Shown here in pieces: positions 1,297 through 20,406 of a DNA stretch of 64,000 nt. Below the pieces are notes generated by a model. That model saw nothing but the letters and a program-made list of their open reading frames with translations. It was not told where the DNA came from and did not search any database. Source of the stretch: Phaeosaccion multiseriatum. Lineage: Eukaryota; Protista; Ochrophyta, other classes. The DNA lies in contig OZ218956.1 of assembly GCA_965112735.1 (NCBI GenBank), positions 2,604,001 to 2,668,000 on the forward strand. The letters are read 5' to 3'. The stretch's first letter is position 1. The number at the start of each line of letters is the position of its first letter. The translations under genes were made by a program, and so were the position numbers.

Positions 1297-1813
1297 GGCT
1301 CTCTACGCCCTGCTATAGGTGAGATTTACCAGCCCCTCCTTGGTCCTCTCCCCTTTTGCAACACCCTTCTTTCAAGGCTACAAAGCCCCGCGAAGCTCCT
1401 CCAAAGCGGAATCGCACAATCCATTTGGTGGAAGCCAGATCAAAGACAACGCATGTCTTCAAGAGATCTTCACTACCAAATGACTCAGCCACACCATCTT
1501 TCAGAGTGTCCAGCTCTCGCCAGAATTCCCGGTCGCCCCTCCCTCCCTGTCCCTCGCTGTCGTTTATCTATATTTCGCCCCTCCTTTGCGTGTGGCCTCG
1601 GCCCCTCTAATCAGTTCGCTGCAGGGAAGAAGACCCTTTCCCACTTGTCACTTGGATGACGCCTCCGTGCTTGTCACTCGAGCTGTGTTTGTCGTGGCAA
1701 GCCAAGTCGATACAATCGGCGTGGCGTTACAATTCAAGTGCGTGCGATTGGATTGTTAAAAGGGTCGTTGGGTTTTGAGGGTTTTGAGCGGGAGCACAAA
1801 ATCGACGGCAAGG
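1297..1813. promoter_or_regulatory. Putative bidirectional promoter, EF-hand/FANCM
   Basis: About 0.5 kb between divergent ATGs; inferred from position only. Confidence 0.45.
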
Positions 1814-3471
1814 ATGGTGGAGTGCTCCCGCCACCGCGAGCGGGGCGGAGCTGTAGCGGAAGGCGTTTGGACGTGCAGCAGCTGCGATAGCAGCAATAGC
1901 GCTGGCCGCTTCCAGTGCATCAAATGCTTCCTGCCGCGGCCGCGGCAAGCAGCACCTGATTCAGATTTGGGCGATTTGGAAGATCCATGTGATGAGCGGG
2001 AGCTGCGGCAGCACGGGCAGGGGGGGGAGTACCACCGAGAGAAGTGCCATCAGAAGCAAGGGATTCTAAACTTTCGGGAAAGAAGAAATGGGGGCGATGC
2101 TCGGCTGCCACCGTTGGGCCGAAGTGGGGCTGGCGGTCAGCGGGAGGGTTGGCGGCTGCCAAACGCCGGGCAGCAGCAGCAGCGGCAACAACAACATGCG
2201 GGAAAGAGGAGGGGTAGAGACGACTCATACTATTCCGGTGATGATGCTGGAGGGGATGCAGGTATTGTTCCCATCGACACAGAGGCCGCGAGGACGTGGG
2301 TCTACCCATCGAACTACCCCATCCGGGAGTACCAAAGGCAGATTGTCACCCAGGCGCTTTTCAAGAACACATTGGTGGTCCTGCCGACCGGCCTAGGGAA
2401 GACTCTCATCGCAGCCGTGGTCATGTACAACTTCTATCGGTGGTTTCCTACGGGGAAGGTGGTGTTCTTGGCCCCCACCAAGCCCCTGGTTGCACAGCAG
2501 ATCAATGCCTGCTACAATATTATGGGCATTCCCGCGAGTGACACGGCAGAGCTGCAGGGAGCCGTGTCGCCGCATACGCGTAAGAAGCTCTGGCAGGAGC
2601 GAAGAGTGTTCTACTGCACGCCTCAGTCCATGGAGAATGACGTTGGGGCAGGGAGGTGTGACGCGAGCCAATTCGTCTGCGTCGTCATCGACGAGGCTCA
2701 TCGAGCAAAGGGCGACTACGCATACACAAAGGTCATTCGACAGCTCGTCTGTGCCCACGGACAGCAGGGGGAAGGAGGGGGAGGAGGCAGGGAGGAAGGC
2801 GTCCCGCGGCAAGGTGGTGGGTTTCGTGTGTTGGGTCTGAGCGCCACCCCGGGCTCCACAGTGAGTAGCGTTCAGGACGTGCTGAACAATTGCCGCATTG
2901 CACACATCGAGTGCCGGACAGAAGACGATCGGGAGGTTGCAAAGCACACCTTCAACAGACAGGTAAGCCAGCGAGCAGAGGTGACCAATGGTATAAGTTC
3001 TCCCCTTAGTGCCCTCAACCCCCCCCGAACCCCTCCTACCCTCACATCCACCTCCCTGTCCTGTCCTGTCCTGTCCTGTCTACAGGTCGAGATTGTAAGG
3101 TGTGATTTAGGAGATGCGATTGAATCGATGCGACGAGCCCTGACCGCTGTGGTGAGGCCCATCGTTCACCACTTGGGCAAGAGAGGCGTCCGTATGAACG
3201 CCAGCAGCGAGGACCTCAAGCCTTATCCGATCTTGATGGCCATGACGCGGTTTCGTGAGGGCGAATTGGCAGAGGTGAGGGAAGTGGAATGGAAGGTGGA
3301 GAAGAGAATGTCGCCACCACCACCATCACCGAAGCACTACTCTTACCACTGCTACGTGTTTGCTGCTGCTGCTGCTGCCCTCCCCCTCTCCTCCTCCTCC
3401 TCCTCCTCCTCCTCCTCCTCCTCCTCCTCCTCCTCCTCGTCGTCGTCCTCCTTCTCCTCCCCCTGCTCCCC

Positions 3472-3502
<31 letters not shown>

Positions 3503-4986
3503 ACTCCTCCTCCTCTCCCCCCACTCCTCCTCCTCCTCCTCCTCCTCCTCCTCCTCCTCCTCCTCCCCCTCCTCTAGAGAATGCCCAATGACATGCGGCG
3601 TGAGGTGGGTTCGGATCTGCTCCTGCTGCGCTCCTTGGTGTCAGCAAGAGAACACCTCGTGACCCACGGTGTGGGCGGTATGAAGACTCAGGTGGACGCC
3701 CTCAGAGATGATGTCAAGAAGGGTGGGGGGGCGCGGACACCCATGTACGCTCAGATGCTGCGCTCGTCCGAGTGGAGTTCGCTGCTACGCATGATCAGCT
3801 CCAAGCAGGGGGGGGGCTTGGCTGACAAGAAGGTATGAAAGACACGGATGTGAGAGGGGAAGGAGAGAGAGAGGGAGAGAAAGGGTGGGCGGCGGAGACG
3901 GGGAGGGAAGACAGGGAGGATGGAGAGGAAGGGGGAGAGGGGGAGGGGGGGGGGTGAGGGCGAGACACTACTGCTAACGCAAGAAATAGGCTGTGTGTGG
4001 TCCATTCCAGCCCTAACAGCGCCGCCTCTCTCCGCTCCTTGGTCTCTCTCTACGTCTGTTCTTGTGCATGGAACGTGTCCACACACGCACTCTCTCGCGC
4101 GCATACATACACACCGCACACACGCACGCGCGCGCACACACACACACACTCACTCGAAAACACGCACACGCACACATACACGCCCGCAGCACCCCAAACT
4201 GGTCAGGCTGATGGAGATCCTCCAGGACCACTTCGGCCGCCATCGCACCGAGGGCACGAGCACTAGAGCCATCATCTTCACGCAGTTCAGGACCAGCGTG
4301 GAGGAGATCGTTAACCATGTGAAGGACCATGCGGAGCCGTGGGAGGGGCAGGAAGAGCTCATTCGAGTCAAGGCCTTTGTCGGGCAAGGAAATTCAGGGA
4401 AAGCAGCAGCAAAAATAGCAGCAGAAGCGGCAGCAGCAGCGGAAGCGGCGGCTGCGGAGGAAGCCGGGGAAGAGGAAATGGCCATTGGGGGCGAGGGCGG
4501 AGGAGGAGCGGGGGGCGGGGAGGGAGACGGGGAGACAGCCGCCGCGCCGCCCACTGCAGCCAGCAAAGTATCCATCAGAGGTCAGACTCAGAAGGAGCAG
4601 AAAGCGGTGGTCAAGGCTTTCTTCGCTGGAGAGTTTAACTGCCTTGTGGCCACGTGCATCGCAGAGGAGGGCCTCGACATTGGGGAGGTCGATTTGATTG
4701 TGTCCTTTGACACGCTCAGCTCGCCCGTAAGGATGGTGCAGAGGATGGGCAGGACGGTGAGTTATCGAGTTCTTGGTGGGAGGAGGAGGAGGAGCAGGAG
4801 GAGGAGGAGGAGGAGGAGCAGGAGGAGGAGGAGGAGGAGGAGGAGGAGCAAGAGGAGGAAGAGCAAATGCGAATGGAAGAGGTCGAGGCTCTTTCTCTCT
4901 TATTTGACCAGGAAGATTTGATCGCACCGGTCTCATTATCACCACTATTATCATCATCACTCGCATCCACCACACATCATACACAC

Positions 4987-5024
<38 letters not shown>

Positions 5025-8000
5025 GCCGCAAGAGGGCGGGGCGAGTGGTGCTGCTGGTGACCAAGGGTGCAGAGGAGAATAAGCTCAAGTCTGCGAACAG
5101 CATGAGCAGGACCGTGAGCAAGGCCCTGACTTCGGCCAAGAGAGACAAGTTCCGGCTGTTTGACAAGAGTCCCCGCATGGTGCCGAGGGGGAGACTGCCA
5201 CAGATGGTCACCAAGGAGATGGTCATACCGGATTATCACCTTAGTCAGGTGGGTAGGGGTGGGGGATGGGGGTGAGTAGGGGCGTGTGTGGTTGTGTATG
5301 TGCGTGTGTCATTGTATAATGTTGTGCCGTCAGAGGCTCACTCGCTCACTTACTCTCTCACTCACTCACTCACTCACTCTCCTCGTACTGCGGCTCATGT
5401 AACAGGTTGGGGGCCATGGTAAGTCAGTGAAGAAGCCCTCCCGCAAGAGACCCCGGGCCAATGATGCCCCCCTGAAGCAGAAGCGCCTGTCCTTGGCCAC
5501 CCTAAGGAAGAGAGACGGTGCAGATGGGGAGGGATGGCGCCTCACCGCAGAGCAGAAGACGGTCCTGGAGAGGGACTACAGCGATCCACAGGGACACACG
5601 TGTTACATTCCCAGCATGGAGGTGGGCTGGGTGGAGTGCTGTCGTGAGAAGCGGCGCCTTCGACAGCAGCAGCCGCCGCCACCGCCGAAAGAACAACAGA
5701 AGGAGCAGGAGGAGGAGCAGGAGAGAGGGAGGGGAGGTGGGGGGGGGGAGGTGGATGGGGGGATGGAAGGAATGGGAGCGGCGAGAATTGGTCATTCTGG
5801 AAGGTACCAATTGCTGCTGGAGATGCAGGGCTTCATCAGGGATGACGCCTGGAAGCGGCTCTACAAATTCAGGCCTGGAAACGCCGCCCCCTCCTCCCGG
5901 AGCTGGGATCGTGAGGGAGTGGAGATGAGTGAGCAGCGGAATCGCGGCGGCCCAGAGGTGGACAAAGCTGCTGTACCTCCTGCTGGGGCAGTGAGAGGAG
6001 GAGGAGGAGGAGGAGGAGGACCAATTTGGGACCTCCATCGCGCCCCGGAGAAGGAGACAAATAAAGGCACCACCAGCAAGAGAAAGCGATTGACGACCGA
6101 AGAGAGCACCAGCACAAGTCACGCAGCTTCACTTTCTCACACTGCATCTACATCAGGCGGATTTGCGGCGCGAGAAAAGAAGCGGAAGAGCGACAGCAGT
6201 TGCCCCAGTACTGCTGCTTCTTCTTCTACTACTACCTCTACCGCCGCAGTAGACACAAACAACACTACGGGCAGGAGGGGCAGGGGTCGGGGCGGAGGCG
6301 GCGGTGAAGGCTTAGACCTGACGATGGAGGAGGACAGAGAGATTCTCGTGGGGGGGGGTGGGGGGGGGGGCAGCAGCAGCAGCAAGGGGGATGGGAGGAG
6401 GGGACCACAGAAAGAGAGGATTGTGATAGATGTGGAAGAGGAGGAGGAGGAGGAGGGGCACTACAGCTGCGGAGGAGGAGGAGGAGGAGGAGGAGGAGGA
6501 GGAGGAGGAGGAGGAGGAAGAGGAGGAGGAGGAGGAGGAGGAGAAGGAGGAGGAGGAAGTGACCGAGGCTTTGACTGGAATAACCTCCCGCCGCTGGAAG
6601 ATGACGAAGAGACAGAAGACGAGGACAGGACCCAAACTCAACCTAGGGAGCCCCCTATACGCGCCGAGCCCCGAGGAAGAGGAGGACCGAAGAGGGGCAT
6701 AGGAGGCCCGGTGGACCCACCAGCTCCTCCGCAGCAGCGACGGCGGGAGGAGATCCGCGAGGAAGCGACGGAAGCTACGAGAGGAGAAGCAGAGGCACAC
6801 GAGGAGGAGCCGAGCGCATGTCGAACATGTGGGGCCGTACCAAATCGGTCGCCCCAGGCGCAGAGCTGTTGCGGCGTCTGCGGGGCGGTGTTCAGCTTGA
6901 GCCAGAGCCAACCACCGCCACCGCCACCCGCTGCTGCTACTCCTGCTGCTGCTTCTCCTGCTGCTGCTTCTCCTGCTGCTGCTCCTGCTACTCCTGCTGC
7001 TGCTTCTCCGGTTCGCCTGACCGCACTTTCTTCTCGCGCTCGGGATGACCACAACCATGGCCGAGTGGGACTGGAGCGGCAAAGGGGGGTTGGCATCGAA
7101 GTGGGTGGGAAAGAGCACAAAGAGCCCTCCACAGCTGCGGCAAGATCCGCGAGAGAGGCCCCTTTGATGTTGCACAGTGGTGGCGACAGCGACAGTCAGC
7201 GGCCGAGGGAGGGGGGGGGGGAGGAGCAGCAGCCGCCTAGGGCGGTCCATGGGCGAGAGGAGGACGTGAACCCAGGACGTAAAGAGGGCGAAGTGAGCTC
7301 GCAGGGAGGGAAGCGAAGAAGGGTGGACGAGGAGGGGGAGAAGGAAGAGAAGGAGAAGGAGGACGTTCAAGCTGGCGAGGACACCGAGGATGAGGAGGAA
7401 ACGGAAGAAAATTCGGAATGCGCAATGTTAGATGTTCAAGCGCTGCGCAGGCAGCAGCGGGAATGCCGCCAGGACGAGGCGAAGGTGACGATGGTGGAGC
7501 GTGATGGCGATGGGGAGGAGGTCTTAGAGGAGGAACAGAGCGCGCAGATGACATCTACTCCGGTGCAGCAGGTGAAGGTAAATCACGGGGCCAAGAAGGG
7601 CAAGGCCGTCCATGTCGATGGCGAGAAGGAGGAGAGCAAAGCGAAGGGTGTGGAGGAGGAGGAGGCGAGGGAGACTGCCCCTGCTGTGAACGCGACGCTC
7701 TTCCCTCTCGCCTTTCATGGGGGTGAAGAGCCTGGTCGAGAGGACGAAACGAAGCTGTTTGGAGAGGGTGGGGGGGGGGGGGAGGAGGAAGCCTGTCACC
7801 AGCAGCGGGATGAGGAGCAGGAGCAGGGCCTTCCTGTTTCCGCAACCACCCGGCCTCCTCTGCTGGACCAAGAGCAAGACCAAGGCCAGGGCCAAGCTGA
7901 GCGTGGTGGGTGGGAACGTGAGAGGCTACGGCAAAGAGCGTGTGCGCCACAGCTTCAGCAGCAACTCGTGATACACCAGCAGCAGTTTGGAGCCTCCTTC

Positions 8001-9541
8001 ACCAACGACCTTCACCCTCACGACCCCCTCGAAGGTGGTGACTTACGGCAGCAGCTCACGGGGGAGGGGGAGGGAGGGCGGCTGGGGCGGGCTGGGGTTG
8101 TTGTGACTAGGGAGGGCAGCAGCGGTGATTGCGGTCAAGATGAGGATAAAGGGGAGGCTCGTGAGAAGGAGAGTGTTAGGTGGATGGCGCAGGAGAAGGA
8201 GGGGGAGGGGGTAATAAGGAGAGGCAACGAGAAGAAGGAGGAAGAGGAGGAGGAGGAGGAGGAGGAGGAGGAGGAGGAGGAGGAGGAGGAGGAGGAGGAA
8301 GAGGAGGAGGAGGAAGGCGAGAGCCTTAGCGCGGAAAGTCAAGACGCAGATGGCGAGGGAAGCTGCTTGGAGCTCTTCTCGACGACAAAGGCATTCACGG
8401 CAAAGACGAAGCAGCGCGGCGAGGAGAGGAAGAAGGGAAGGAGAGAGGAGATGAAAGGACCGGTTCAAGGGCAAAGCTGGGCTGCGGTGAGCACTCAAGA
8501 CGTGGACAGAGACAGAGGCAGAAGCGACGGGGGAGGTCGAGGGAGAGGGAAAGGGAGGAGTTGGAGGGAGGGCAGGGCGGCGCTGATTCCCCAACCGCCT
8601 CCCGTGATCCGAAGGGCGCAGCTCCCCCCCCCATCTACTCTTTCTGCTGCTACTACTGCCACTGGTGGTGGTGGTGGTGGTGAGGCTCCTGTCGCCGAAG
8701 CTGAGGCTCCTGCAGCATCAATGGCAGAGCAGACAAATAAGGAGGCACTCCAGGAGGGGGGCTCTGTGGAGGATGATGGTGGTCCAGCACAAGAAGAACA
8801 AGGACAAGAGGGAGGGAGCCATGGGGGGGGTGCGGCAAGGGGGGCGGATCAAGACGCGACTTGCTCATCGCCTTCTCGTCTCATATCTCCTCCTCCTCCT
8901 CCTCCTCCTCCTCCTGCTCCTCCTCTCCCTCATCTTTCTACAACCACTGCTGCTCTTCCTCCTCCTACTACTACAACTACAACTACTACTAGTCCCACTA
9001 CTACTAGAACAACTACTACTCCCGCTATTACCACTCGCCCTGTGCCGCAAGCAGTTGGATCAGTAGCAACAGTGGCGGAAGCAGCACATGTCGAGGTGGA
9101 AGTGGGCGCAGCAGCAGCAGCAGCAAGTCCTGGCCAGAGAGACGACTCTTCACCGCAAGATGTCCGACATTCTCACCAGAGCGAAGAATTTGCATCCTCC
9201 CAGCGACCGCAGGACGGCGAGCGCTTGGGGGAAGTACCAGAGCCGCAGTTGGTGATACAGCAGCAGCAGGAGGAGGAGGAGGAGGATGAGGAGGAGGGAG
9301 AGGAGGAGCAGGAGGAGCAGCAGCAGGGAGAGGAGGAAGAGAAGGGGGAGGAGGAGAAGAGGGAGGAGGGGAAGGCGGCACGAGAGGAGCGCCCAGAAAA
9401 TGTCATCGTCACTCGTAGTCCGTTCTTCCAGCAGAAAGGACAAGGGCAAGGGCAAGGGCACGCTGCTAGATCCCACGAGCCCCCACGACCGCGCCAAGAC
9501 TCAGGTGGACAGGGCTGCAGGACAAACCCGACGGTAGTAGT

Positions 9542-9587
<46 letters not shown>

Positions 9588-12500
9588 CATGTTGGTGGTA
9601 CAACATCATCGGAAGGGGCACTCTCCACCACCGTCGCTGCTGCTGCTGCACCTGCGGAGCCTCTTGTCGTCGCTGGTACTGCTGTGACTTGTGTGCTTCC
9701 TGTTGCGGGTGGGGTAGGAGAGTGGGGGCAGCAAGAGGGAGGGAATGGGCTCAGTGCATGCCCCAGCGGAGAGCAGGAGCAACAGCAGCAGCAGCAGCAG
9801 GAGGAGGAGGAGGAGGAGGAGGTGCAGAAGAAGACTTGCCGGCAAGAGGTTCCCGCAGTAGGGAAGGGGGAGGGAGGTCCAGAAGCGAAGAGAAGAGGTC
9901 CGGAATCCATCCCTGAGCCTGCACACGCGCCCGCAGCAGCGGCCCCAGCAAGAGCAACAGCAACAGCGGCGGTGTCCTCTATCCCTTCGTGTCTCAAGAA
10001 GCGGAGACGGAACTCGAGCAGCAGGGCTCGGGCTGCTTATGCTGCTGCTACCGCTCCTGCCGCTGCTGCTTGTACTACTCCGGCGCCGTTCACCTCTTCG
10101 GTAGACAGAAGGCGGCTTGCCAGCCATGCACTCACCCCACGAGCAGGAAGGGGTGACTGTGACTCCGGAGCAGTGACTGCAGCCTCGAGGGTCGGCGATG
10201 CCCTGCAGTCTGCTACCCCTACTGCTAGTGTTGCTGCCGGTACTGCTGCTGGCGCTGCTGCCAACGGGCCTTCTTCCGTATCCGCTGCGGTGGGTGGTGC
10301 ACCAGGCGTCGCCATGTCTGCCTACCAGTTCAACCGACTCAGAAAGGCCCGGAGAAGAAGTAGGTCGACAGGGAACATTCCTGCTGTTTGCGCTCCTTCT
10401 CCTGCTGGTGCTGTTGGTGGTGGTGGTGGGGGAGGTGGTGATAGTGCTGGCACTAGTGATTTCTCGAATGGAACGGGCGCTCCCTCGACTCGCGACGCAA
10501 GGTCAGAGGGGAATGGACGTGGGGCACAGCAAGTGGCAGGGACAGGAGGGGTGGTTCAGGTTCCGAAGCGGGTAGAGGAAGGCAAAGGCAAGCGTGTTAG
10601 GAAGGAACGTGCGGAAACTGTTGAGAAGATCGACAGCGACGACGACAGCGAGGAGGAGGAGAAAGAGGAGGAGACCGGAGCAAAAGAAAAGAAGGGGGGA
10701 GGGGGAGAGGAGGAGGAGGAGGACGACGACGACGACGATGAAGACGAGGGAGGCAGGAACCGCGGAGAGGGGGGGGAAGGTGATGAAAGGTGCATGGTTT
10801 GCGGGGATGACGCCGTCGCGGATGAGAATGACCCCATCATTTTCTGCGACGGGCCGGGCTGCGGGGTCGTCACGCATCGCTACTGCTACGGAGTGGAGGT
10901 GGTCCCTGAGGGGGATTGGCTATGCGACGTATGCCTCAGTCTCGCGGTGGTGCCCAGCTCGACGGCGAGTAGTCCTGTTGGTGTTGGTGGTGATGGTGAT
11001 GGTGGCGTGGAGAAGGAGGTGGAGAGCTACAAGAGCGACGACGACGATGATGATGACGACGACAACGACAAGAGAAAGAAGAAGAAAAACGAGAGGGGGA
11101 AGAAGCAGAGCAGGAGGAGTAAGAACAAGCACGCGGGAGGAGGAGGAGGAGGAGGAGGAGGAGGAGGAGGAGGAGGAGGAGGCTGCTCGCACTCGCAGCG
11201 GAAGGCGAAGCGAAGGCCGCGCTGCGAGCTGTGTAACCTCCGGGGTGGGGCAATGAAGAGGGTGGTCGGGGAGACGGACAAGTGGGCACACCTTCTCTGC
11301 GTGTTTTACATTCCCGAGCTCACACTCGACCAGACCACCACCCAACCGCGTAGGCTTGAGGACCTCAACCCCGAGAGGGCGGATCTTGTGTGTTCGCTGT
11401 GCTTGGGGCGAGGAGGGGCAGTCGCGCAGTGCGCCGTGGGGAGCTGCTACACAGGAGCACATCCTTACTGTGCTTTTCGGTACAGCACAAGGTGCCATGG
11501 AGGGCGGGCCAAGATCAAGATGGGGGGTCTGGGTGGGGGTCGGAGCAAGAGAGGGGCGGGCGAAAGGCATGGGAGAGGAGGAGGAGGAGGAGAAAGTTCG
11601 CCACCTTCATCGCAAAGTTTTCTTCTGTTGGAGGACGGTGACTGCGAGGAGATGGGGGAGGCAATTGGCTACCGGCTGTTCTGCCCCGAGCATGCCGAGC
11701 CGAAGAGGAGAAGGCGAGAGAGGAAGGTGATGAAGGAGAGAGAGCACGAGCGCTTTCGACGCGAGCAGGAGAAGGTGAAGGAAGAGGCCAGGCAGCGGAA
11801 GCTTGGCCAAGGTGGGGCGGCATTGGGCCTGTTGGAGGTGGCGCAGCAAGCGTCACCTGAGTCATCGTCGCCCTCGGAGCTCATGGCCCTGACCCAGGCA
11901 GTGGCGATGGGCGAAGAAGACGAAGAAGAACAAGGACGAGGAGAACGAAAGGAAGAAGGTGGAGGAGGAGGAGGGCACTGCGTGGGGAGCGGCGACGCGG
12001 CCAGTAAGGGAAGGGAGGAGGGAGGGGGTAAGAAGCTGCTGCGGGGCAGAAGAAGTAAGAGTAAGGGGAAGGGGAAGGCGAAGGGGCACTCTCTGCAAGG
12101 GCAGCAGCTCAGGCCTACAAAGGGGCAGCAGCTGGTGATGCAACAGCAACAGTTGGTGGTACAGCAGCGGAAGAGCAAGGGCTTCTCCACGGACGTGACT
12201 CGTTTGTTCGACGAGGAAGCGGCTCTCGACGAAGAGGAGCGGAAAGAGGGGGGCTGGAGCGATGATGAGGAGGACAAGCGCGCCGAGCTGCTAGACTTGG
12301 AGGAGGAGAACTCAGAGGACGAGAGGTTCATCAATGATGGAGAGATCAGCTACAGCAGCGAGGGGGGCAGCAGTCAGAGTCAAAGCCAGAGCCAGAGTCA
12401 GAGCGAGAGCCAGAGACAGCGTCAGCAGGAGCGGGAGAGTTATGGCTGTCGGGCTGGCACGCAGTCTGCGAGGGGGGGGGGGGACGACGACAACACCAAC

Positions 12501-14180
12501 AAGAACGGCAGCACGAGCAAGAGGAGAAGGTTGGACAAGGTAAAGAGGAAGAGGATTCAAGGAGTTGACGGAGGAGAGGGCGGGGACGGACATCTGATGT
12601 ACATGCAGCTCCACAAGCAGTGGGAGGAGGACGGCGCGCATGAGGCCTTTGAAGCACCGGCGAGGAGCAAGATGGGCTTCATCAATGCCATCCTCAGGCA
12701 CTCCAAGGACGGTGGAGATGCGATGGATGTGGAGAAGGCCTACTGGGGAGCATCGACCCAGACCCAAACACAGGCAGTAGAGGAGAAGGGGCACACGCAG
12801 ATGCAACAGCTGCAGCAGGCGCAGGAGCAGCAGCAGCAGCGAGAGGGGCAGAGGAGTCAGCTGAATCAAGCCGGTGGAAAGAGGAGCAACAACAGCGACG
12901 ATAGTAGCGACAGTAGCAGGGAGGAGGACGAAGACGAAGATGACGACGAGGAGGAGGAGCTCGAGCTGTCTCTACACCGCAGAGGGCGGAGGACTGAGGA
13001 GAAGCAGCCCTCGCCTCAGCAGCAGCAGCAGCAGCAGCAACAGGAGCGGGCACTACAGGGGCATGGCATAGGTCGAGGCCGCCAGGGTCAGGGTCAGGGA
13101 CCGGAGCAGCGAGGAGAGCGGACACCGGACAAAGCCTTGACATGGGAGGAGCGCGGCTGGCAGGGGACTCCGGGGGGAAGGGGAGGAGGAGGAGGAGGAG
13201 GAGGAGGAGGAGGAGGAGGAGGAGGAGGAGGAGGAGGAGGAGGAGGAGGAGGAGGAGGAGGAGGAGGAGGAGCCCAAACAAGCACGAGCAGCGGCGGCGC
13301 CTCTCCTCGCTACGACGTCGAAAGTGGCGGGGAAAAGGGCGCCCCTTCATCATCCGTAGGGCGAACGGGTGGTCAGCAACAGACGCAGCGGTCGATGCCT
13401 GTGCTTACAGGGAGGCAGGGCGGCCCGATGAGCGGTGGGGGCAGCTTCAACGGTAAGGGCTTCAAGCCACCGCGACCCACGCAGCAGCACCAGCAGAACT
13501 CTGACGAAGGAGAGCCCCCCACGCGCTCCAAAGGAGTTCCCCGCCTCTGGGCTATGGCGACTGTGGACCCCCCTTTGCCGGCTGCTGCTCCTGCCCCTGC
13601 TCCACCTGCTGCTGCTCCTGCTGCTGCTCCTGCTGCTGCTGCTCCTTCCTCTTCGGCTGCTGCCCCCCCCCCTTTGAGGGTTTTAGAGCCGCATTCATCG
13701 TCGCGAAGCAGCAGTAGAGCAGCGCAGCCCCCCTTGGAGGAGGCCGCTAACAAACCCGCCTTGACCGCGGAGGTTCGAGCGAGGATAGCGGCCAATCGAC
13801 TCCAGGCCTTGGAGAAGCGGAGGCAGCACCAGCAGCAGCAGCAGCGGCAGCAGCGGCAGCCGCATCACCTGAAGCAGGCTTCCCCGGGGTGCTTGGGGCG
13901 TGCTCATGCTGCGAACAACGGGAACTGGTGTGGGGGTGGAGGTGGTGGCGTTACAGGCTTTGGCTTTGTTGCGGCGTCTCGGGTCGGCTCCTCAGTCGCA
14001 GTAGGAGGAAGCGCGGCAGTGGGCGGAAGCGCAGCAGCAGGAGGAGGAGCATCGGCAGAAGAAGGAGCAGCAGGAGGAAGAGGAGAAGGAGGAGGGCAGA
14101 AAGCGGTGCGGCCGGGGGGGAAGGAGAACGGACGGAAGGGGGGTGGAGGGGGCGGGAGCCAGGATCCGCGCTGCCGCTGA
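1814..14180 (+). CDS. FANCM: FANCM/Mph1-family DEAH helicase, about 3719 aa, 6 exons (1814-2962, 3086-3274, 3578-3832, 4190-4756, 5024-5248, 5406-14180)
   Basis: TWVYPSNYPIREYQ, NTLVVLPTGLGKT, YNFYRWFP, DEAH, LSATPG, HPKL, IIFTQFR, ATCIAEEGLDIGEVD and QRMGRT|GR are all present. All introns are GT-AG and phase 0. The C-terminal part has a FANCM MM3-like motif (FDEEA...FIND...MYM). Confidence 0.93.
1868..1927 (+). other. RanBP2-type zinc finger at the FANCM N-terminus
   Basis: WTCSSCDSSNSAGRFQCIKC fits W-x-C-x2-C-x3-N-x6-C-x2-C exactly. Confidence 0.85.
10791..11693 (+). other. PZP module (PHD, Zn knuckle, extended PHD) within FANCM
   Basis: CMVC...IIFCDGPGC...HRYCYGV...PEGDWLCDVC; CELC...GGAMK...WAHLLC...IPE; CSLC...QC...C...HPYC...FCPEH. 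This is the BRPF/JADE/AF10-type pattern. Confidence 0.88.
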
Positions 14181-14737
14181 CAAGTCAAGTCACGCACAGG
14201 CTGACTACGTGCAGCCGCAAATGAGCCTGCACCGGGCACACGCCCCTTTTTTCTGATGATGGGTGTACTTACCTGCTTGATGTGCCCTCACATAACACCC
14301 TCCCCTCTTCTGATGAGATACTACTCACACAAAAAAAAATCCAACAAAATACACACACAATCGCTCCGCAGTCTGGCCCGCGGCCGCAACAGATAATCCT
14401 AAAAGGGCAGAATTCAGCAGCTGGCTATATAAGCAACCAATGACCAGACGTACTACAGTCCATCAAAATCAGTGTGTGTGTGCAAAGACGCATTCACGCT
14501 GGTGCGTGGCATCAGCCTAGAGAAAGGGCCCAAGCTGCGGAGCAGGCCAAGCACAAAGCAGAAATAAAGGGCTCAACTTAGAAAAAGAAGGGCCGTCCAT
14601 TGCAAGGAAAGGGGAAAAGGAGGAGGGGCAGGAGAAGGAGAAAGGGGACCGGTAGAGGAGGAAAGAAACCGCAGAAGAGCGAAAGATAAAGATTCTTTGG
14701 TCGGCCGGCTGAGCGATGGCACTGGACAACTCTCACG

Positions 14738-14805
14738 ATGACGAGCATCCCAAGCAACGGCTCCGGTGGCGAATCCCCCGCAGCAGCAGCAGAAGCACCA
14801 CCACG

Positions 14806-14840
<35 letters not shown>

Positions 14841-15197
14841 GCAGCAGCAGCAGCAGCAGGAGGAGGAGGAGGAGGAGGAGGAGGAGCAGTGGCGGAGAAT
14901 CGGTGCGTATAGCTATTTGGTCCTATCTACTGCTGCTGCTGCTGCTGCTCATTACAACGAGCCTACAGGCCTGCTGATGGACGACCCCTCCCATCCTCTT
15001 CAGCCCCCTCCGGAACTATGCATGTATACATCTAATGGATCTTTCCTTTCTCTCCCTTGCTCCCTCCTCTTGGATGCTTTCGATGTGCAAAAGTTCTTCA
15101 AGAGCACCAGCCTGTGCCAAGGCTTCTGGGCTACGTCTCCGCGCACTTTCACCTGAATGCCGTCCTGCATCCGGCCTACACCACGCCCGTGCCTACT
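14738..15197 (+). pseudogene. Truncated copy A of the orphan gene at 18375 (5' part only)
   Basis: Paralogous to about 18375-18800, with RLLGYVSAHFHLNAVLHPAYTTPV versus RLLGYVSAHFHPNAFLHPAFTTPV. It carries a 4-bp insertion and is cut at the duplication junction. Confidence 0.6.
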
Positions 15198-17648
15198 AGG
15201 ATAGGACCCAAACTCAACCTAGGGAGCCCCCTATCCGCGCCAAGCCCCGAGGAAGAGGAGGACCGAAGAGGGGCATAGGAGGCCCGGTGGACCCACCAGC
15301 TCCTCCGCAGCAGCGACGGCGGCAGGAGATCCGCGAGGAGGCGACGGAAGCTCTACGAGAGGAGACGCACAGGCACACGAGGAGGAGCCGAGCGCATGTC
15401 GAGCATGTGGGGCCATACCAAATCGGTCGCCCCAGGCGCAGAGCTGTTGCGGCGTTAGCGGGGCGGCGTTCAGCTTGAGCCAGAGCCAACCACCGCCACC
15501 GCCACCCGCTGCCGCTACTCCTGCTGCTGCTTCTCCTGCTTCTCCTGCTGCTGCTCCTGCTACTCCTGCTGCTGCTTGTCCGATTCGTCCAACGGCACTT
15601 TCTTCTCGCGCTCGGGATGACCACAACCATGGCCGAGTGGGAGTGGAGCGGCACAGCAGGGGGGTGGCATCGGAGTGGGTGGGGAAGAGCTCAAAGAGCC
15701 CTCCACAGCTGCGGCAAGATCCGCGAGAGAGGCCCCTTTGATGTTGCTTGCACAGTGGTGGCGACAGCGACAGTCAGCGGCCGAGGGCGGGGGGGGGGGG
15801 AGGAGCAGCAGCCGCCTAGGGCGGTCCATGGGCGAGAGGAGGACGTGAACCCAAGACGTAAAGAGGGCGAAGTGGGCTCGCAGGGAGGGAAGCGAAGAAG
15901 GGTGGACGAGGAGGGGGAGAAGGAAGAGAAGGGGAAGGAGGACGTTCAAGCCGGCGAGGACACCGAGGATGAGGAGGAAACGGAAGAGAATTCGGAATGC
16001 GCAATGTTAGGTGTTCAAGCGCTCCGCAGGCAGCAGCGGGAACGCCGCCAGGACAAGGAGAAGGTGACGATGGTGGAGCGTGGTGGCGATGGGGAGGAGG
16101 TCGTAGAGGAGGAACAGAGCGCGCAGTTGACATCTACTCCGGTGCAGCAGGTGAAGGTAAATCACGGGGCCAAGAAGGGCAAGGCCGTCCATGTCGATGG
16201 CGAGAAGGAGGAGAGCAAAGCGAAGGGTGTGGAGGAGGAGGAGGCGAGGGAGACTGCCCCTGCTGTGAACGCGACGCTCTTCCCTCTCGCCTTTCATGGG
16301 GGTGAAGAGCCTGGTCGAGAGGACGAAACGAAGGTGTTTGGAGAGGGGGGGGGGGGAGGAGGAAGCCTGTCACCAGCAGCAGGATGAGGAGCAGGAGCAG
16401 GGCCTTCCTGTTTCCGCAACCACCCGGCCTCCTCTGCTGGACCAAGAGCAAGACCAAGGCCAGGGCCAAGCTGAGCGTGGTGGGTGGGAACGTGAGAGGC
16501 TACGGCAAAGAGCGTGTGCGCCACAGCTTCAGCAGCAACTCGTGATACACCAGCAGCAGTTTGGAGCCTCCTTCACCAACGACCTTCACCCTCACGACCC
16601 CCTCGAAGGTGGTGACTTACGGCAGCAGCTCACGGGGGAGGGGGAGGGAGGGCGGCTGGGGCGGGCTGGGGTTGTTGTGACTAGGGAGGGCAGCAGCGGT
16701 GATTGCGGTCAAGATGAGGATAAAGGGGAGGCTGGAAGTGAGAAGGAGAGTGTTAGGTGGATGGCGCAGGAGAAGGAGGGGGAGGGGGTAATACGAAGAG
16801 GCAACGAGAAAAAGGAGCAAGAGGAGGAGGAGGAGGAGGAGGAGGAGGAGGAGGAGGAGGAGGAGGAGGAGGAGGAGGAGCCCAAACAAGCACGAGCAGC
16901 GGCGGCGCCTCTCCTCGCTACGACGTCGAAAGTGGCGGGGGAAAGGGCGCCCCTTCATCATCCGTAGGGCGAACGGGTGGTCAGCAACAGACGCAGCGGT
17001 CGATGCCTGTGCTTACAGGGAGGCAGGGCGGCCCGATGAGCGGTGGGGGCAGCTTCAACGGTAAGGGCTTCAAGCCACCGCGACCCACGCAGCAGCACCA
17101 GCAGAACTCTGACAAAGGAGAGGCCCCTACGCGCTCCGAAAAAGTTCCCCGCCTCTGGGCTATGGCGACTGTGGACCCCCCTTTGCCGGCTGCTGCTCCT
17201 GCCCCTGCTCCACCTGCTGCTGCTGCTCCTTCCTCTTCGGCTGCTGGGGCCTGCCCCCCCCCCTTTGAGGGTTTTAGAGCCGCATTCATCGTCGCGAAGC
17301 AGCAGTAGAGCAGCGCAGCCCCCCTTGGAGGAGGCCGCTAACAAACCCGCCTTGACCGCGGAGGTTCGAGCGAGGATAGCGGCCAATCGACTCCAGGCCT
17401 TGGAGAAGCGGAGGCAGCGCCAGCAACAGCAGCAACAGCAGCAGCAGCGGCAGCATCAGCAGCGGCAGCCGCATCACCTGAAGCAGGCTTCTCCGGGGTG
17501 CTTGGCTGGGGCGTGCTCATGCTGCGAACAACGGGAACTGTGGGGGTGGAGGTGGAGGTGGTGGCGGCTTTGGCTTTGGCTTTGTTGGCTGCGCGCGGCG
17601 TCTCGGGTCGGCTCCTCAGTCGCAGTAGGAGGAAGCGCGGCAGCAGGA

Positions 17649-17681
<33 letters not shown>

Positions 17682-17858
17682 AGCAGCAGCAGCAGCAGGA
17701 TGAAGAGGAGGAGCGAGGAAGAGGGCAGAAAGCGGTGCGGCCGGGGCGGGGGGAAGGAGAACAGACGGATGAGGGGCGGAGGGGGCGGGAGCCAGCCAGC
17801 CACGATCCTCGCTGCCGGTCACAAGTCAAGTCACAGGCTGACTACGGGCAGCCGCAAT
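15198..17858 (+). pseudogene. Frameshifted, internally deleted tandem duplicate of the FANCM terminal exon
   Basis: 15198-16860 aligns with 6622-8300, and 16860-17858 aligns with about 13260-14230. Several indels break the frame. Confidence 0.88.
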
Positions 17859-18374
17859 GAGCCTGCCACGAGCGAGATGCATCCAGTCAATCTGGTGGGA
17901 GGTGGAGAGCGCCTTCATCCCGCATGCCCGCTGTATTCTGCTCAAACAGCTCCTCAGCGCGGAAGAAAAAAACAAGCCGACTTTATTTTTGCTTTGCTAT
18001 TATTTATTATTTCCCCCTAAAAAACGAAATCCCCCCTGAAAAAAAATTAAACCCTTTGCCCTACACCCTACACAGTGTGGCAAAGCCACCACGCCCCCCT
18101 GTCTGCGTGCGTGCGTAATAGCACGGACAGTGCAACAAGAGAAAGGGCCCTTCCTGGCTGCGCCAACGTAAGAAGAACAAAGCAGAAGTAAAGCAAGGGC
18201 GAGCGTAGTATGAATGCCGGTCCATTGCAGGGGGCCACTGCTGCATTGCAAGCGCAAAAGGAGGAGGAGGACAAGGCAGGGGACCGGTAGGGAGCAGCCA
18301 AAGAAACGGGAACCGCAGAAGAGCGAAAGATTCTTTGGTCGGCTGGCTGATGGCACTGCTGGACAACTTCCACG

Positions 18375-19011
18375 ATGACGAGCATCCCAACGGCTCCGGT
18401 GGCGAGTCCCCCGCAGCAGCAGCAGACGCACCACCACCAGCAGCAGGAGCAGCAGCAGCAGCACCACCACCAGCAGCAGGAGCAGCAGCAGGAGGAGGAG
18501 GAGGAGGAGGAGTGGCCGGGAATCGGTGCGTTTGGCCCTGCTATACGATGCTGCTGGCTGCTGCTTATTATCGCGAGCCTACAGGGCTGTTGTTGGGCTA
18601 CCCCTCCCGCCCTCTTCAACCCCCTCCGGAACTATGCGTACCTCTTATGGATCTTTCCTTTCTCTCCCTTGCTTCCTCCGCTCTTCCTTCTTCAATGTGC
18701 AAAAGTTCTTCAGGACAACCAGCGGCAAGGCTTCTGGGCTACGTCTCAGCGCACTTTCATCCGAATGCCTTCCTGCATCCGGCCTTCACAACGCCCGTGT
18801 CAACAATGGCGCTAGGGGCCGCTCAGCCAGCAGACCCGGCGGCACAGGCAACAACAGATATTGAGGAGTGTCTCGCTGCTGGGGTCGCTGATGCTGATGA
18901 TGCTCAGCATGGCTACAGCATCCTCTACTGTCCCGTCGTTCCTATAGTACAAGCCCCCGCAGCCCTAAGAGCAGAAGCAGCGACAATAATAGCAGGAGCC
19001 ATAGCAGAAGG

Positions 19012-19055
<44 letters not shown>

Positions 19056-20037
19056 GAGGAGGAGGAGGAGGAGGAGGAGGAGGAGGAGGAGGAGGACGAG
19101 GAGGAGGAGGACGAGGAGGAGGACGAGGAGGAGGAGGAAGAGGAAGAGGACGAGGACGAGGACGAGGAGGAGGAGGAGGAGGAGGAGGAGGAAGAGGAGG
19201 AGGAGGAGGAGAAGGAGGAGGAGGAGGAGGAGGAGGAGGAGGAGGAGAAGGAGGAGGAGGAGGAGAAGAAGAGGCAAGAAAGAAGAAGAAGAAGAAGAAG
19301 AAGAAGAAGAAGAAGAAGAAGAAGAAGAAGAAGAAGAAGAAGAAGAAGAAGAAGAAGAAGAAGAAGAAGAAGAAGAAGAAGAAGAAGAAGAAGAAGAAGA
19401 AGAAGAAGAAGAAGAAGAAGAAGAAGAAGAAGAAGAAGAAGAAGAAGAAGAAGAAGAAGAAGAAGAAGAAGAAGAAGAAGAAGAAGAAGAAGAAGAAGAA
19501 GAAGAAGAAGAAGAAGAAGAAGAAGAAGAAGAAGAAGAAGAAGAAGAAGAAGAAGAAGAAGAAGAAGAAGAAGAAGAAGAAGAAGAAGAAGAAGAAGAAG
19601 AAGAAGAAGAAGAAGGAGGAGGAGGAGGAGGAGGAGGAGGAGGAGGAGGAGGAGGAGGAGGAGGAGGAGGAGGAGGAGGAGGAGGAGGAGGAGGAGGAGG
19701 AGGAGGAGGAGGAGGAGGAGGAGGAGGAGGAGGAGGAGGAGGAGGAGGAGGAGGAGGAGGAGGAGGAGGAGGAGGAGGAGGAGGAGGAGGAGGAGGAGGA
19801 GGAGGAGGAGGAGGAGGAGGAGGAGGAGGAGAAGGAGGAGGAGGAGGAGGAGGAGGAGGAGGAGGAGGAGGAGGAGGACGATGCCCTGCAGCGTCTGCTC
19901 AGACCACAGCAGCGGCTTCGCAGCCACAGCACCATGGCGACGAACAACGACGTGGCCCGGCGAGCCGGGGGCAGCGAGAAGGCCAAAACGGCCACGCCAA
20001 CAGCCACCTCGACAACAGCAGCAACAACGTGCACATC

Positions 20038-20077
<40 letters not shown>

Positions 20078-20406
20078 GTAACACCCACGCTCCAGTCTCT
20101 GAGGCAGGAAGAAGCCTGTCGCGCGCCCCGCCCCTTCCACCCACCAGCATCATCACCTCGACCACGACCACCACCACCACCGGGCTCTCATCCGCTCCGC
20201 GCTGGCTCGGCACCCACCCCAGGGGGGGCGGGGAGTCGGTCGCAGCTGCTGGCAGCGGCTGTGACGAGGCGACGACAGCGCCCTGCCCTGGGCCGTCTTT
20301 CATCCCTCAAATAGGAGACGGCCAGGAAGACAGAGCTGGCAACGAACACTGGAGCGACGTACTGCAGCAGCAGCAAGAGCAACAGGAGCAATTGGACCAG
20401 TTGGTG

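Follow-up and report, generated by a model that had tools for sequence, protein, structure and literature searches.

A six-exon stramenopile FANCM orthologue with a predicted PZP module and an RPA32C-type C-terminal motif

FANCM has a central part in protecting stalled replication forks and holds back meiotic crossovers. To our knowledge, its route to its substrates has been worked out only in animals and yeasts, where it works by way of FAAP24, MHF and the FA core complex. An ERCC4-like domain with (HhH)2 is found in animals and in Hef; as far as we know this tail is not universal in the family, since yeast Mph1 and Fml1 do without it. We know of no characterised FANCM that targets itself by a PZP module together with docking on RPA. 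PZP modules of the BRPF, JADE and AF10 proteins read histone H3 tails and nucleosomal DNA, and ubiquitin binding by NZF fingers is marked by a T-F signature after the second cysteine.

Fork reversal, D-loop dissociation and crossover suppression are the activities expected of the FANCM family, and a review of the family lists neither a RanBP2-type zinc finger, nor a PZP module, nor an RPA32C motif among its domains (PMC4573851). The MM3 segment of human FANCM, residues 1502-1708, is without known function (PMC6743340). The class of RPA32C-binding motifs that includes SMARCAL1, TIPIN, XPA/Rad14 and UNG2 has been described (PMC11387677), and SMARCAL1 and FANCM form a synthetic-lethal pair in human cells (bioRxiv 10.1101/2024.02.27.582393).

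Could a FANCM carry its targeting devices within its own polypeptide? We analysed a stretch of 64,000 nucleotides from Phaeosaccion multiseriatum, here called the window. Very likely it holds a six-exon FANCM gene of a stramenopile layout, with a RanBP2-type zinc finger, the motor, a degenerate ribbon, a PZP module placed before MM3 and an RPA32C-type motif, from which the ERCC4-type tail has been lost. A literature search for FANCM with PHD or PZP found no description of such a protein; the layout is visible in public annotation.

Gene model and helicase motor

The gene occupies 1814-14180 on the + strand. Its model was read from genomic DNA and from colinearity with orthologues, and comprises six exons with GT..AG borders throughout, all in phase. 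Splicing yields 3719 aa, the length that the initial annotation had estimated.

1814-2962, + strand: exon 1 (start codon, RanBP2-type zinc finger, helicase N-lobe motifs I to III), from the ORF and a GT donor at 2963
3086-3274, + strand: exon 2 (helicase insertion domain), both junctions colinear with the intronless orthologue P0060
3578-3832, + strand: exon 3, from colinearity with intronless P0060
4190-4756, + strand: exon 4 (helicase C lobe up to the QRMGRT motif), Pfam Helicase_C E 2.7e-16; 9el5 E 3.1e-25
5024-5248, + strand: exon 5 (end of the helicase core), from colinearity with P0060
5406-14180, + strand: exon 6 (2924 codons plus stop), an open frame whose junction LSQ/VGG corresponds to the continuous SQVGG of P0060

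Colinearity with P0060 extends over all five splice junctions, among them that after exon 4 (RMGRT/GRKR), and on into exon 6. The last exon has no internal stop in its 2924 codons; the other two + frames have 65 and 88, or one stop per 33-45 codons. Homology searches covered this exon in two parts, 5406-9323 and 9378-14177. About 2000 low-complexity residues swell the protein to its full length.

Does this 8.7-kb exon conceal introns? Intron 1 (2963-3085, 123 nt) is itself in frame and free of in-frame stops, so an open frame alone is no proof that all of exon 6 is exon. Were further in-frame, stop-free introns hidden there, we would still be dealing with one gene of the same domain order, but its protein would fall short of 3719 aa. 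Pyrimidine- or CA-rich sequence marks the known introns; near 6914-7213, 8714-9013, 9914-10513 and 13514-13813 purines make up 0.41-0.50 and GC3 is lower, and the orthologues are shorter (1480-2450 aa). On the other hand, the candidate stretches, stop-free as they are, translate to Ala/Ser/Thr/Pro-rich linkers such as the orthologues also have. We regard hidden introns as unlikely, though with a real minority chance, and retain the six-exon model.

A decayed partial copy of exon 6 lies at 15195-17866 and has suffered frameshifting indels; the gene itself is still open.

The motor and the conserved region that follows it are placed as follows.

2315-2866, + strand: helicase ATP-binding lobe (GKT 2390-2404, DEAH 2690-2701, SAT 2840-2854), from Pfam and motif positions
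5535-5870, + strand: post-helicase conserved block (WRLTAEQ ... HSGRYQLL ... AWKRLY), aligning with P0060 and Choristocarpus P0176

Helicase motifs I (GKT), II (DEAH), III (SAT) and VI (QRxGRTGR) were all located, and exon 1 matches Pfam ResIII (E 1.6e-20) and DEAD (E 1.1e-19). The closest solved relative of the motor is human FANCM 9el5, with E 1.7e-71 for exon 1 and 3.1e-25 for exon 4; the exon-1 helicase matches Hef 1wp9 at E 2.4e-35 and RIG-I at only 2.7e-10. In the helicase tree the protein sits among the stramenopile FANCMs, as sister to that of the brown alga Choristocarpus (support 99/93), a position that makes its bearer an ochrophyte. Both the best solved match and the tree bear out the FANCM helicase of the initial annotation. 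Judged by its sequence, the gene is a FANCM orthologue, and its product a predicted SF2 double-strand-DNA translocase of the FANCM/Hef/Mph1 family. No Pfam match to the MHF-binding region PF16783 was found in the protein. When the stramenopile post-helicase alignment was compared with the animal MHF-binding region, hhalign returned a probability of 7%, short of significance, over 22 columns around H-S-x-R.

Zinc modules, MM3-type block and C-terminal motif

Outside the motor, six further features were delineated.

1868-1927, + strand: N-terminal RanBP2/NZF-type zinc finger, exact fit to W-x-C-x2-C-x3-N-x6-C-x2-C
6819-6881, + strand: Cys4 ribbon, two CxxC motifs 17 residues apart
10791-11693, + strand: PZP module (PHD1, Zn knuckle, ePHD) with two low-complexity inserts, from Pfam PF00628/PF13831 and PF13832
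12201-12611, + strand: MM3-type block (F-D-E-E-A ... acidic ... F-I-N-D-G ... M-Y-M-Q-L), from the three-part motif and profile score
12669-12740, + strand: conserved block K-M-G-F-I-N-A-I-L-R-H ... G-G-D ... E-K-A-Y, matching Ectocarpus P0002, Mayamaea FANCM P0246 and others
13758-13823, + strand: RPA32C-binding-type motif (L-T-A-E-V-R-A-R-I-A-A-N-R-L-Q-A-L-E-K-R-R), from profile A1 and a known-peptide HMM

The N-terminal finger, already called a RanBP2 zinc finger from the letters alone, fits its pattern exactly, though its Pfam PF00641 score of 14.6 bits is below the cut-off of 27. Orthologous oomycete fingers do have a precomputed PF00641 match, and a finger ahead of the helicase is also present in oomycetes, in the brown alga Choristocarpus and in P0218/P0222. 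At the position of the T-F signature the Phaeosaccion finger has D-S, with T-F or T-L in several orthologues; we therefore do not propose that this FANCM binds ubiquitin. Within the 1306 aa that precede window position 9324, no CxxC motifs occur other than the two of the Cys4 ribbon, earlier described as CxxC-x11-CxxC at about 6819-6885. The ribbon probably represents a RanBP2-like finger that has degenerated. In the brown-alga-type homologue P0001, three RanBP2-like fingers lie after the post-helicase motif and ahead of the PZP module, one of them with a Pfam E of 1.3e-4.

In the PZP module, PF13832 matches at E 2.9e-17, and the zinc ligands run in order through the Cys4-His-Cys3 of PHD1, a Cys2-His-Cys knuckle and the ligands of the extended PHD. 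Across 38 orthologues (alignment A4), C7, C10, C25, C30, H35, C38, C51, C54, C151, C154, H173, C176, C210, C220, C225 and H230 are invariant and C207, C233 and C304 almost so. The AlphaFold2 model has a core with pLDDT above 90 and two inserts, model residues 72-138 and 251-292, with pLDDT under 50. Foldseek placed AF10 5DAH, JADE1 8GDX (TM 0.82, rmsd 1.9) and BRPF1 5ERC (TM 0.80) at the top, with E from 8.5e-12 to 2e-7 against the PZP structures of AF10, JADE1, BRPF1, Nto1 and PHF14 and target TM up to 0.82. Pfam matches, conserved ligands and predicted fold agree with the full PZP first read at 10791-11693, and on this model the region is predicted to adopt the integrated PZP fold.

The MM3-like acidic motif reported at 12204-12608 was recovered at nearly the same borders. 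With the window left out of its construction, a stramenopile MM3 profile gives it 35.3 bits, versus a maximum of 23.8 in 5000 shuffles. The animal profile reaches 18-22 bits on oomycete FANCMs; used on the window, the animal-only profile gives 12.2 bits, not above shuffles. The three-part motif is common to animal, oomycete, diatom and brown-alga-type sequences, and we class the block as MM3-type by a transitive link, from animal to oomycete to window.

Profile A1 was compared with 177,635 PDB sequences, and its top two matches were the SMARCAL1 peptide 4MQV_B (E 3.8e-6) and TIPIN 194-217 (E 5.5e-4); RAD14 residues 2-19 were also among the matches. Conversely, an HMM made from the SMARCAL1 and TIPIN peptides alone finds its best site in the whole protein at 13758-13823, with 8.2 bits, a score that one in 5000 shuffles reaches. 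The motif of the window alone, run by phmmer against the PDB, gave no match. Matched in this way to solved ligands, the C-terminal RPA-type motif of the initial annotation falls in the candidate RPA32C-binding class. Sixty of the fetched FANCMs carry it at 20 bits or more, 59 of these at most 60 aa from the C-terminus; in the window, by contrast with diatoms, it is followed by a further 119 or so low-complexity residues. Weaker RPA-type motifs stand upstream of the ERCC4-like tail in Phaeothamnion and in oomycetes.

Might these modules serve other ends? The PZP could be a DNA-binding or protein-docking zinc scaffold and no histone reader, and the C-terminal motif a generic basic helix without an RPA partner. 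The two long low-complexity inserts of low pLDDT that interrupt the PZP would fit such a role, as would the low score of the window's motif on its own; the many diatom FANCMs in which Pfam finds only PHD1 suggest that the ePHD half is dispensable. Yet the zinc ligands have been kept across deep stramenopile divergence, the predicted fold matches H3-bound PZP structures of AF10, JADE1, BRPF1 and PHF14, the motif profile singles out the two solved RPA32C ligands from the whole PDB, and in 59 proteins the place of the motif near the C-terminus is constant. We consider the scaffold explanation rather improbable and continue with a histone-reading PZP and an RPA-docking motif as the preferred, if predicted, functions.

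One gene, and the history of its tail

Are helicase and PZP parts of the same gene? Two adjoining genes, a FANCM helicase and a zinc-finger-PZP chromatin protein, might have been joined by low-complexity, GC-rich DNA that is open by chance. The idea first arose because no helicase was seen on PZP contigs: the first homology search gave helicase-less PZP proteins (P0001, 1876 aa; Ectocarpus P0002, 1485 aa), no helicase was found upstream on their contigs, and none turned up when the PZP contigs L001-L004 were searched. It was dropped once helicase-PZP proteins surfaced. P0002 begins inside a zinc finger, 220 nt from its contig end. P0001 begins at an acceptor-like site, and the motif with which it opens, QEWELLYDPSDM, carries on the post-helicase region seen in Choristocarpus FANCM P0176 and in P0060. 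Several PZP-only 'unnamed proteins' of brown-alga type in the databases are probably truncated FANCM genes. In L005, by contrast, positions 6001-10437 form a single uninterrupted ORF of 1478 codons with DEAD, Helicase_C, PHD and zf-HC5HC2H_2, and 74 fetched proteins have helicase, PHD1 and ePHD in that order, including oomycete proteins named FANCM. Because the exon-6 frame is open (the other frames being closed by frequent stops), P0060 is colinear, 74 proteins have both parts and the MM3 block of FANCM lies downstream of the PZP, we conclude that a single gene encodes FANCM motor, full PZP, MM3-type block and RPA32C-type motif as one predicted polypeptide; two genes are highly improbable. 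The chance of an assembly chimera or dead gene is close to nil, for although the partial exon-6 copy just downstream points to a rearranged region and the four sequencing runs that hold it, none of them recorded as RNA, all come from one study, the reading frame is unbroken, no catalytic helicase motif or zinc ligand is missing, the order is that of the orthologues, and the frameshifts are in the downstream copy, not in the gene.

The guess that this might be an unstudied lineage-wide architecture has held up: the layout is seen in oomycetes, in diatoms (in many of which only the first PHD finger is scored by Pfam) and in further marine lineages. About 45 oomycete proteins, many of them named FANCM, combine PF00270 and PF00271 with PF00628/PF13831 and PF13771/PF13832, and PF00641 is present in many of these as well. 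The oomycete FANCM-PZP entries are automatic annotations only, and no paper on them was found.

The lack of ERCC4 and HhH2 recorded at the outset is upheld. The protein of the window has no Pfam match to ERCC4 (PF02732) or HhH2, hhalign gives probabilities below 1% against the oomycete and animal tail alignments (A2, A3), and tblastn of relatives' tails finds nothing elsewhere in the window. No tail is recognisable past the RPA motif, as in many diatom FANCMs. The tail of the oomycete FANCM-PZP proteins, on the contrary, aligns with animal tails at an hhalign probability of 97% (E 9.5e-11), and an ERCC4-(HhH)2-like tail is also kept in the Ectocarpus (78%) and Phaeothamnion (64%) relatives by the same method; profiles were needed, single-sequence PDB searches with the Phaeothamnion and Phytophthora tails giving nothing useful. 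Brown-alga-type PZP proteins, although partial models whose helicase part falls outside the contig, have PZP, MM3 block and ERCC4-(HhH)2-like tail in common. The proposal that the PZP had been swapped in for the ERCC4 tail does not survive, as oomycete and brown-alga-type relatives hold both. Since PZP and tail coexist in relatives and the PZP is always upstream of the MM3 block, in the window as in relatives, the alignments indicate that the PZP is an ancient insertion and that loss of the tail here is a separate, later event.

Proposed targeting and comparison with known systems

We propose that the motor would remodel stalled forks and D-loops, by analogy with other FANCMs, and that two built-in adaptors would bring it to its substrate. 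The C-terminal motif may dock on the winged-helix domain of RPA32, and thereby on RPA-coated single-stranded DNA; the PZP, as modelled, may hold the enzyme on chromatin through the histone H3 tail and perhaps DNA. In this lineage, these contacts could together take on the targeting role that in animals falls to FAAP24 and the ERCC4-HhH2 tail. More tentatively, and at somewhat less than even confidence, stramenopile FANCM may ancestrally be a 'self-targeting' fork remodeller, composed of motor, H3-reading PZP, NZF-type finger and SMARCAL1-type RPA32C motif, in which RPA and chromatin contacts replaced FAAP24-type targeting in the tail-less lineages (this organism and diatoms). A major eukaryotic lineage, with diatoms, brown algae and the oomycete pathogens of crops among its members, would then have two other targeting devices inside FANCM itself. 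If both are functional, they amount to an experiment of nature in how a fork remodeller can be directed, would tie FANCM action to chromatin state, and offer ways to intervene in the recombination of diatoms and brown algae.

Animal FANCM (human, 2048 aa) provides the best solved match to the motor, and it shares the order of motor first and MM3-type acidic block after it. The window FANCM differs in its lack of PF16783, PF02732 and HhH2, and in its additions: RanBP2-type zinc finger, PZP and RPA32C-type motif, none of which was found in the animal FANCMs checked.

The 'Fanconi anemia group M protein' entries of oomycetes (Phytophthora, Peronospora, Pythium, Aphanomyces, Saprolegnia, Albugo, Bremia, Plasmopara) share with the window RanBP2 finger, helicase, PZP and MM3 in order, with 44-47% identity in the helicase. 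Unlike the window protein they keep an ERCC4-(HhH)2-like tail, their RPA-like motif is weaker and internal, and at 1650-2420 aa they have far less low-complexity sequence. Diatom FANCMs (Thalassiosira, Cyclotella, Pseudo-nitzschia, Skeletonema and others) have the helicase, a PHD finger upstream of MM3, a block of the F-I-R-S-V-L-E-H-H type and, in the last 40 aa or so, a strong RPA32C-type motif, with no ERCC4 listed by Pfam; mostly PHD1 alone is found, the ePHD being weak or absent, and those checked have no N-terminal RanBP2 finger.

BRPF1, JADE1, AF10 and PHF14 share the three-part zinc module and its predicted fold, and their structures are complexes with the H3 tail; they are acetyltransferase-complex subunits or DOT1L cofactors, no DNA motors, and lack the two long disordered inserts of the window's PZP. 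SMARCAL1 (HARP) and TIPIN have the RPA32C-binding motif class in common with the window FANCM and no homology beyond it. SMARCAL1 is an annealing helicase of the SNF2 family that has HARP domains and bears its motif at the N-terminus; it is likewise a fork remodeller recruited by RPA, and the RPA-type device predicted here belongs to the same peptide class that recruits it in animals.

One protein or two

Are the helicase and the PZP module (PHD1, zinc knuckle and ePHD) of the FANCM candidate at 1814-14180 parts of one protein or of two? Six segments joined in phase make up the gene and amount to 3719 codons, the figure read from the sequence alone.

Exons of the FANCM candidate (open segments, GT..AG introns, in phase)
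1814-2962, + strand, exon 1
3086-3274, + strand, exon 2
3578-3832, + strand, exon 3
4190-4756, + strand, exon 4
5024-5248, + strand, exon 5
5406-14180, + strand, exon 6

Pfam assigns ResIII/DEAD to exon 1, Helicase_C to exon 4, and PHD/PHD_2 followed by zf-HC5HC2H_2 (E 2.9e-17) to exon 6. Among solved structures, human FANCM comes closest to each of the two helicase lobes (9el5; E 1.7e-71 and 3.1e-25); archaeal Hef ranks after it, and RIG-I-like helicases far lower. The window protein is a FANCM family member, and every element of the initial annotation is present where it had been placed.

Exon 6 contains no stop in 2924 codons, and the other two forward frames contain 65 and 88. Intron 1 (2963-3085, 123 nt) likewise keeps the frame and lacks stops, an ORF running straight through it from 1775 to 3577. 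An open frame by itself is thus no proof of an exon in this genome, and the one-gene case therefore leans on comparison with other sequences. Following this precedent, in-frame introns may also lie within exon 6.

A HMMER search of the whole library with the PZP-to-end part of the window protein retrieved proteins that also bear the FANCM helicase. One orthologue, P0060/P0163 (1478-1480 aa), carries DEAD, ResIII, Helicase_C, PHD and zf-HC5HC2H_2, and its gene in an NCBI assembly is a single unbroken ORF (L005, 6001-10437). The spliced window helicase matches P0060 with 43% identity over 747 columns and is colinear with it over all five predicted junctions and onward into exon 6, which validates the splice model. 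With P0060 as query, the search turned up about 45 proteins from oomycetes (Phytophthora, Peronospora, Hyaloperonospora, Pythium, Globisporangium, Aphanomyces, Saprolegnia, Thraustotheca, Albugo, Bremia, Plasmopara), 1650-2420 aa long and in many cases labelled 'Fanconi anemia group M protein'. These combine helicase families with PF00628/PF13831 and PF13771/PF13832, often with PF00641 too; animal FANCMs among the matches have PF16783 and PF02732 in place of the PHD-type families. The order helicase, PHD1, ePHD recurs in 74 fetched proteins.

The MM3 region of human FANCM spans aa 1502-1708 and is without known function (PMC6743340). A three-part acidic block (F-x-D/E-x-E-A ... F-I-N-D ... M-x-x-x-Y) lies downstream of PZP in the window protein. 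It is common to oomycete and diatom FANCMs and to brown-alga-type PZP proteins (P0002, P0046, P0006), and is also found in animal FANCMs, there inside MM3. An animal-only MM3 profile scored 18-22 bits on oomycete proteins and not significantly when applied directly to the window protein; a stramenopile profile built without the latter gave it 35.3 bits, against a shuffle maximum of 23.8 (n=5000). A FANCM-specific block thus follows PZP, which places PZP inside FANCM. Together, the stop-free exon 6, the colinearity with P0060, the 74 similarly ordered proteins and the position of MM3 bear out the proposed single helicase-PZP polypeptide.

The first homologues retrieved are annotated as stand-alone PZP proteins: P0001 (ENA), P0002 (Ectocarpus sp. 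12 AP-2014) and P0006 (Phaeothamnion confervicola). They first suggested two genes, a reading rejected in favour of truncated gene models.

PZP-only loci
L002, 1-1836
L001, 220-9860
L004

P0002 has a contig end 220 nt away, and its start falls inside a zinc finger. P0001 starts at an acceptor-like site, and its opening motif continues the post-helicase region of Choristocarpus FANCM and P0060. All three have the look of FANCM 3' portions whose upstream part was cut off by a contig end or an unrecognised intron. On an AT-rich metagenomic contig (L006, 5063-10760), a helicase N lobe ORF (5063-5938) and a helicase-C/PZP/MM3 ORF (5913-10760) share 26 nt but differ in frame, which points to a frameshift or short intron. 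The source label of the longer ORF, 'ribosomal protein S14', is a misnomer.

A partial copy downstream

Copied segments
15195-16880, copy of 6619-8303, 95.8% identity
16778-17866, copy of 13173-14230, 87.8% identity
18242-18799, copy of the region after the gene, 14601-15191, 79.9% identity

The copy is chimeric and partial, without helicase or PZP. Its indels are numerous, with many lengths not divisible by three, and its substitutions fall evenly on the codon positions. For these reasons it looks like a decaying pseudogene fragment; the gene itself is open. The copied exon 6 pieces serve as an internal control, the copy being frameshifted and the frame of the gene kept open.

Two related 146-codon ORFs (14716-15156 and 18375-18815), both with segments such as EPTGLL and PLQPPPELC, belong to the same tandem duplication. 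Adjoining the duplicated segment is an extreme simple repeat, 18335-20314, with an ORF of 659 codons that includes a run of roughly 100 Lys codons and, after it, roughly 100 Glu codons, and poly-Phe/Ser/Leu on the opposite strand.

Zinc fingers, RPA-type motif and tail

The N-terminal finger conforms fully to the RanBP2 consensus, at a Pfam score of only 14.6 bits, under the cut-off. Such a finger also precedes the helicase in oomycetes, Choristocarpus and two further clades, and in none of the animal FANCMs checked. Ubiquitin-binding NZF fingers typically have a T-F pair. This pair was not found in the window's N-terminal finger, and we therefore propose no ubiquitin role. The Cys4 ribbon (6819-6881) contains both of the CxxC motifs that occur in the 1306 residues preceding position 9324; three RanBP2-like fingers occupy the matching region in a brown-alga-type homologue. 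Positions 9325-9375 fall within a low-complexity, acidic portion of exon 6; the homology searches with this exon covered the stretches on either side, 5406-9323 and 9378-14177.

All PZP zinc ligands are kept in an alignment of 38 orthologues. The AlphaFold2 model derived from it has a core pLDDT above 90, with two low-complexity inserts below 50. Its top Foldseek matches are solved PZPs of AF10, JADE1 (TM 0.82, rmsd 1.9), BRPF1 (TM 0.80), yeast NuA3 and PHF14, several of them H3-tail complexes.

A profile of the window's C-terminal motif aligned with four diatom-clade tails was run against all PDB sequences. The SMARCAL1 peptide on RPA32C (4MQV_B, E 3.8e-6) and TIPIN 194-217 (E 5.5e-4) ranked first and second, and the Rad14 N-terminus was among the matches; all three peptides belong to the RPA32C ligand class (PMC11387677). 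With an HMM from the two solved peptides alone, the top site in the entire window protein was the C-terminal motif, equalled in 1 of 5000 shuffles. The motif reaches at least 20 bits in 60 fetched FANCMs, including those of Thalassiosira, Cyclotella, Cyclostephanos, Skeletonema and Pseudo-nitzschia, and lies at most 60 residues from the C-terminus in 59 of the 60. Unlike in diatom FANCMs, about 119 low-complexity residues follow it in the window protein. Weaker RPA-type motifs lie upstream of an ERCC4-(HhH)2-like tail in Phaeothamnion, Pythium and Phytophthora.

Was the ERCC4 tail exchanged for PZP and the RPA motif, as initially suggested? Its absence is confirmed, no ERCC4/HhH2 similarity being found in the window protein's tail or elsewhere within the 64-kb window. 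The exchange is contradicted by oomycete FANCM-PZP proteins, which hold both PZP and a tail similar to animal ERCC4-(HhH)2 (probability 97%, E 9.5e-11, 199 columns); the Ectocarpus (78%) and Phaeothamnion (64%) tails are similar too. Judged from sequence, the simplest history would be an ancestral stramenopile FANCM ordered as finger, motor, PZP, MM3, RPA motif and ERCC4-HhH2, whose tail later disappeared from the diatom line and, in the same event or another, from that of the window organism. In the helicase tree the window groups with Choristocarpus, a brown alga (99/93), and both together adjoin the P0060 group, so the losses of the tail were probably independent.

Targeting of the motor and known systems

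Motors of the FANCM family travel along duplex DNA, reverse forks, take D-loops apart and keep crossovers down (PMC4573851). Two built-in adaptors would aim the window's FANCM. By analogy with SMARCAL1, its C-terminal motif would dock on the RPA32 winged helix of RPA-coated single-stranded DNA; PZP may bind the H3 tail, perhaps also DNA, as in BRPF1, JADE1 and AF10. Without the ERCC4-HhH2 tail, a platform for a FAAP24-like partner would be missing.

A review of the family names helicase, MHF-binding, RMI, ERCC4 and HhH domains and no others (PMC4573851), and our literature searches brought up no paper describing a FANCM that has PHD/PZP, a RanBP2 finger or an RPA32C motif. The window protein does not differ in kind from the oomycete and diatom FANCM entries in public databases, whose domains are listed by automatic pipelines. 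The layout is real, widespread and uncharacterised, and already readable from public annotations.
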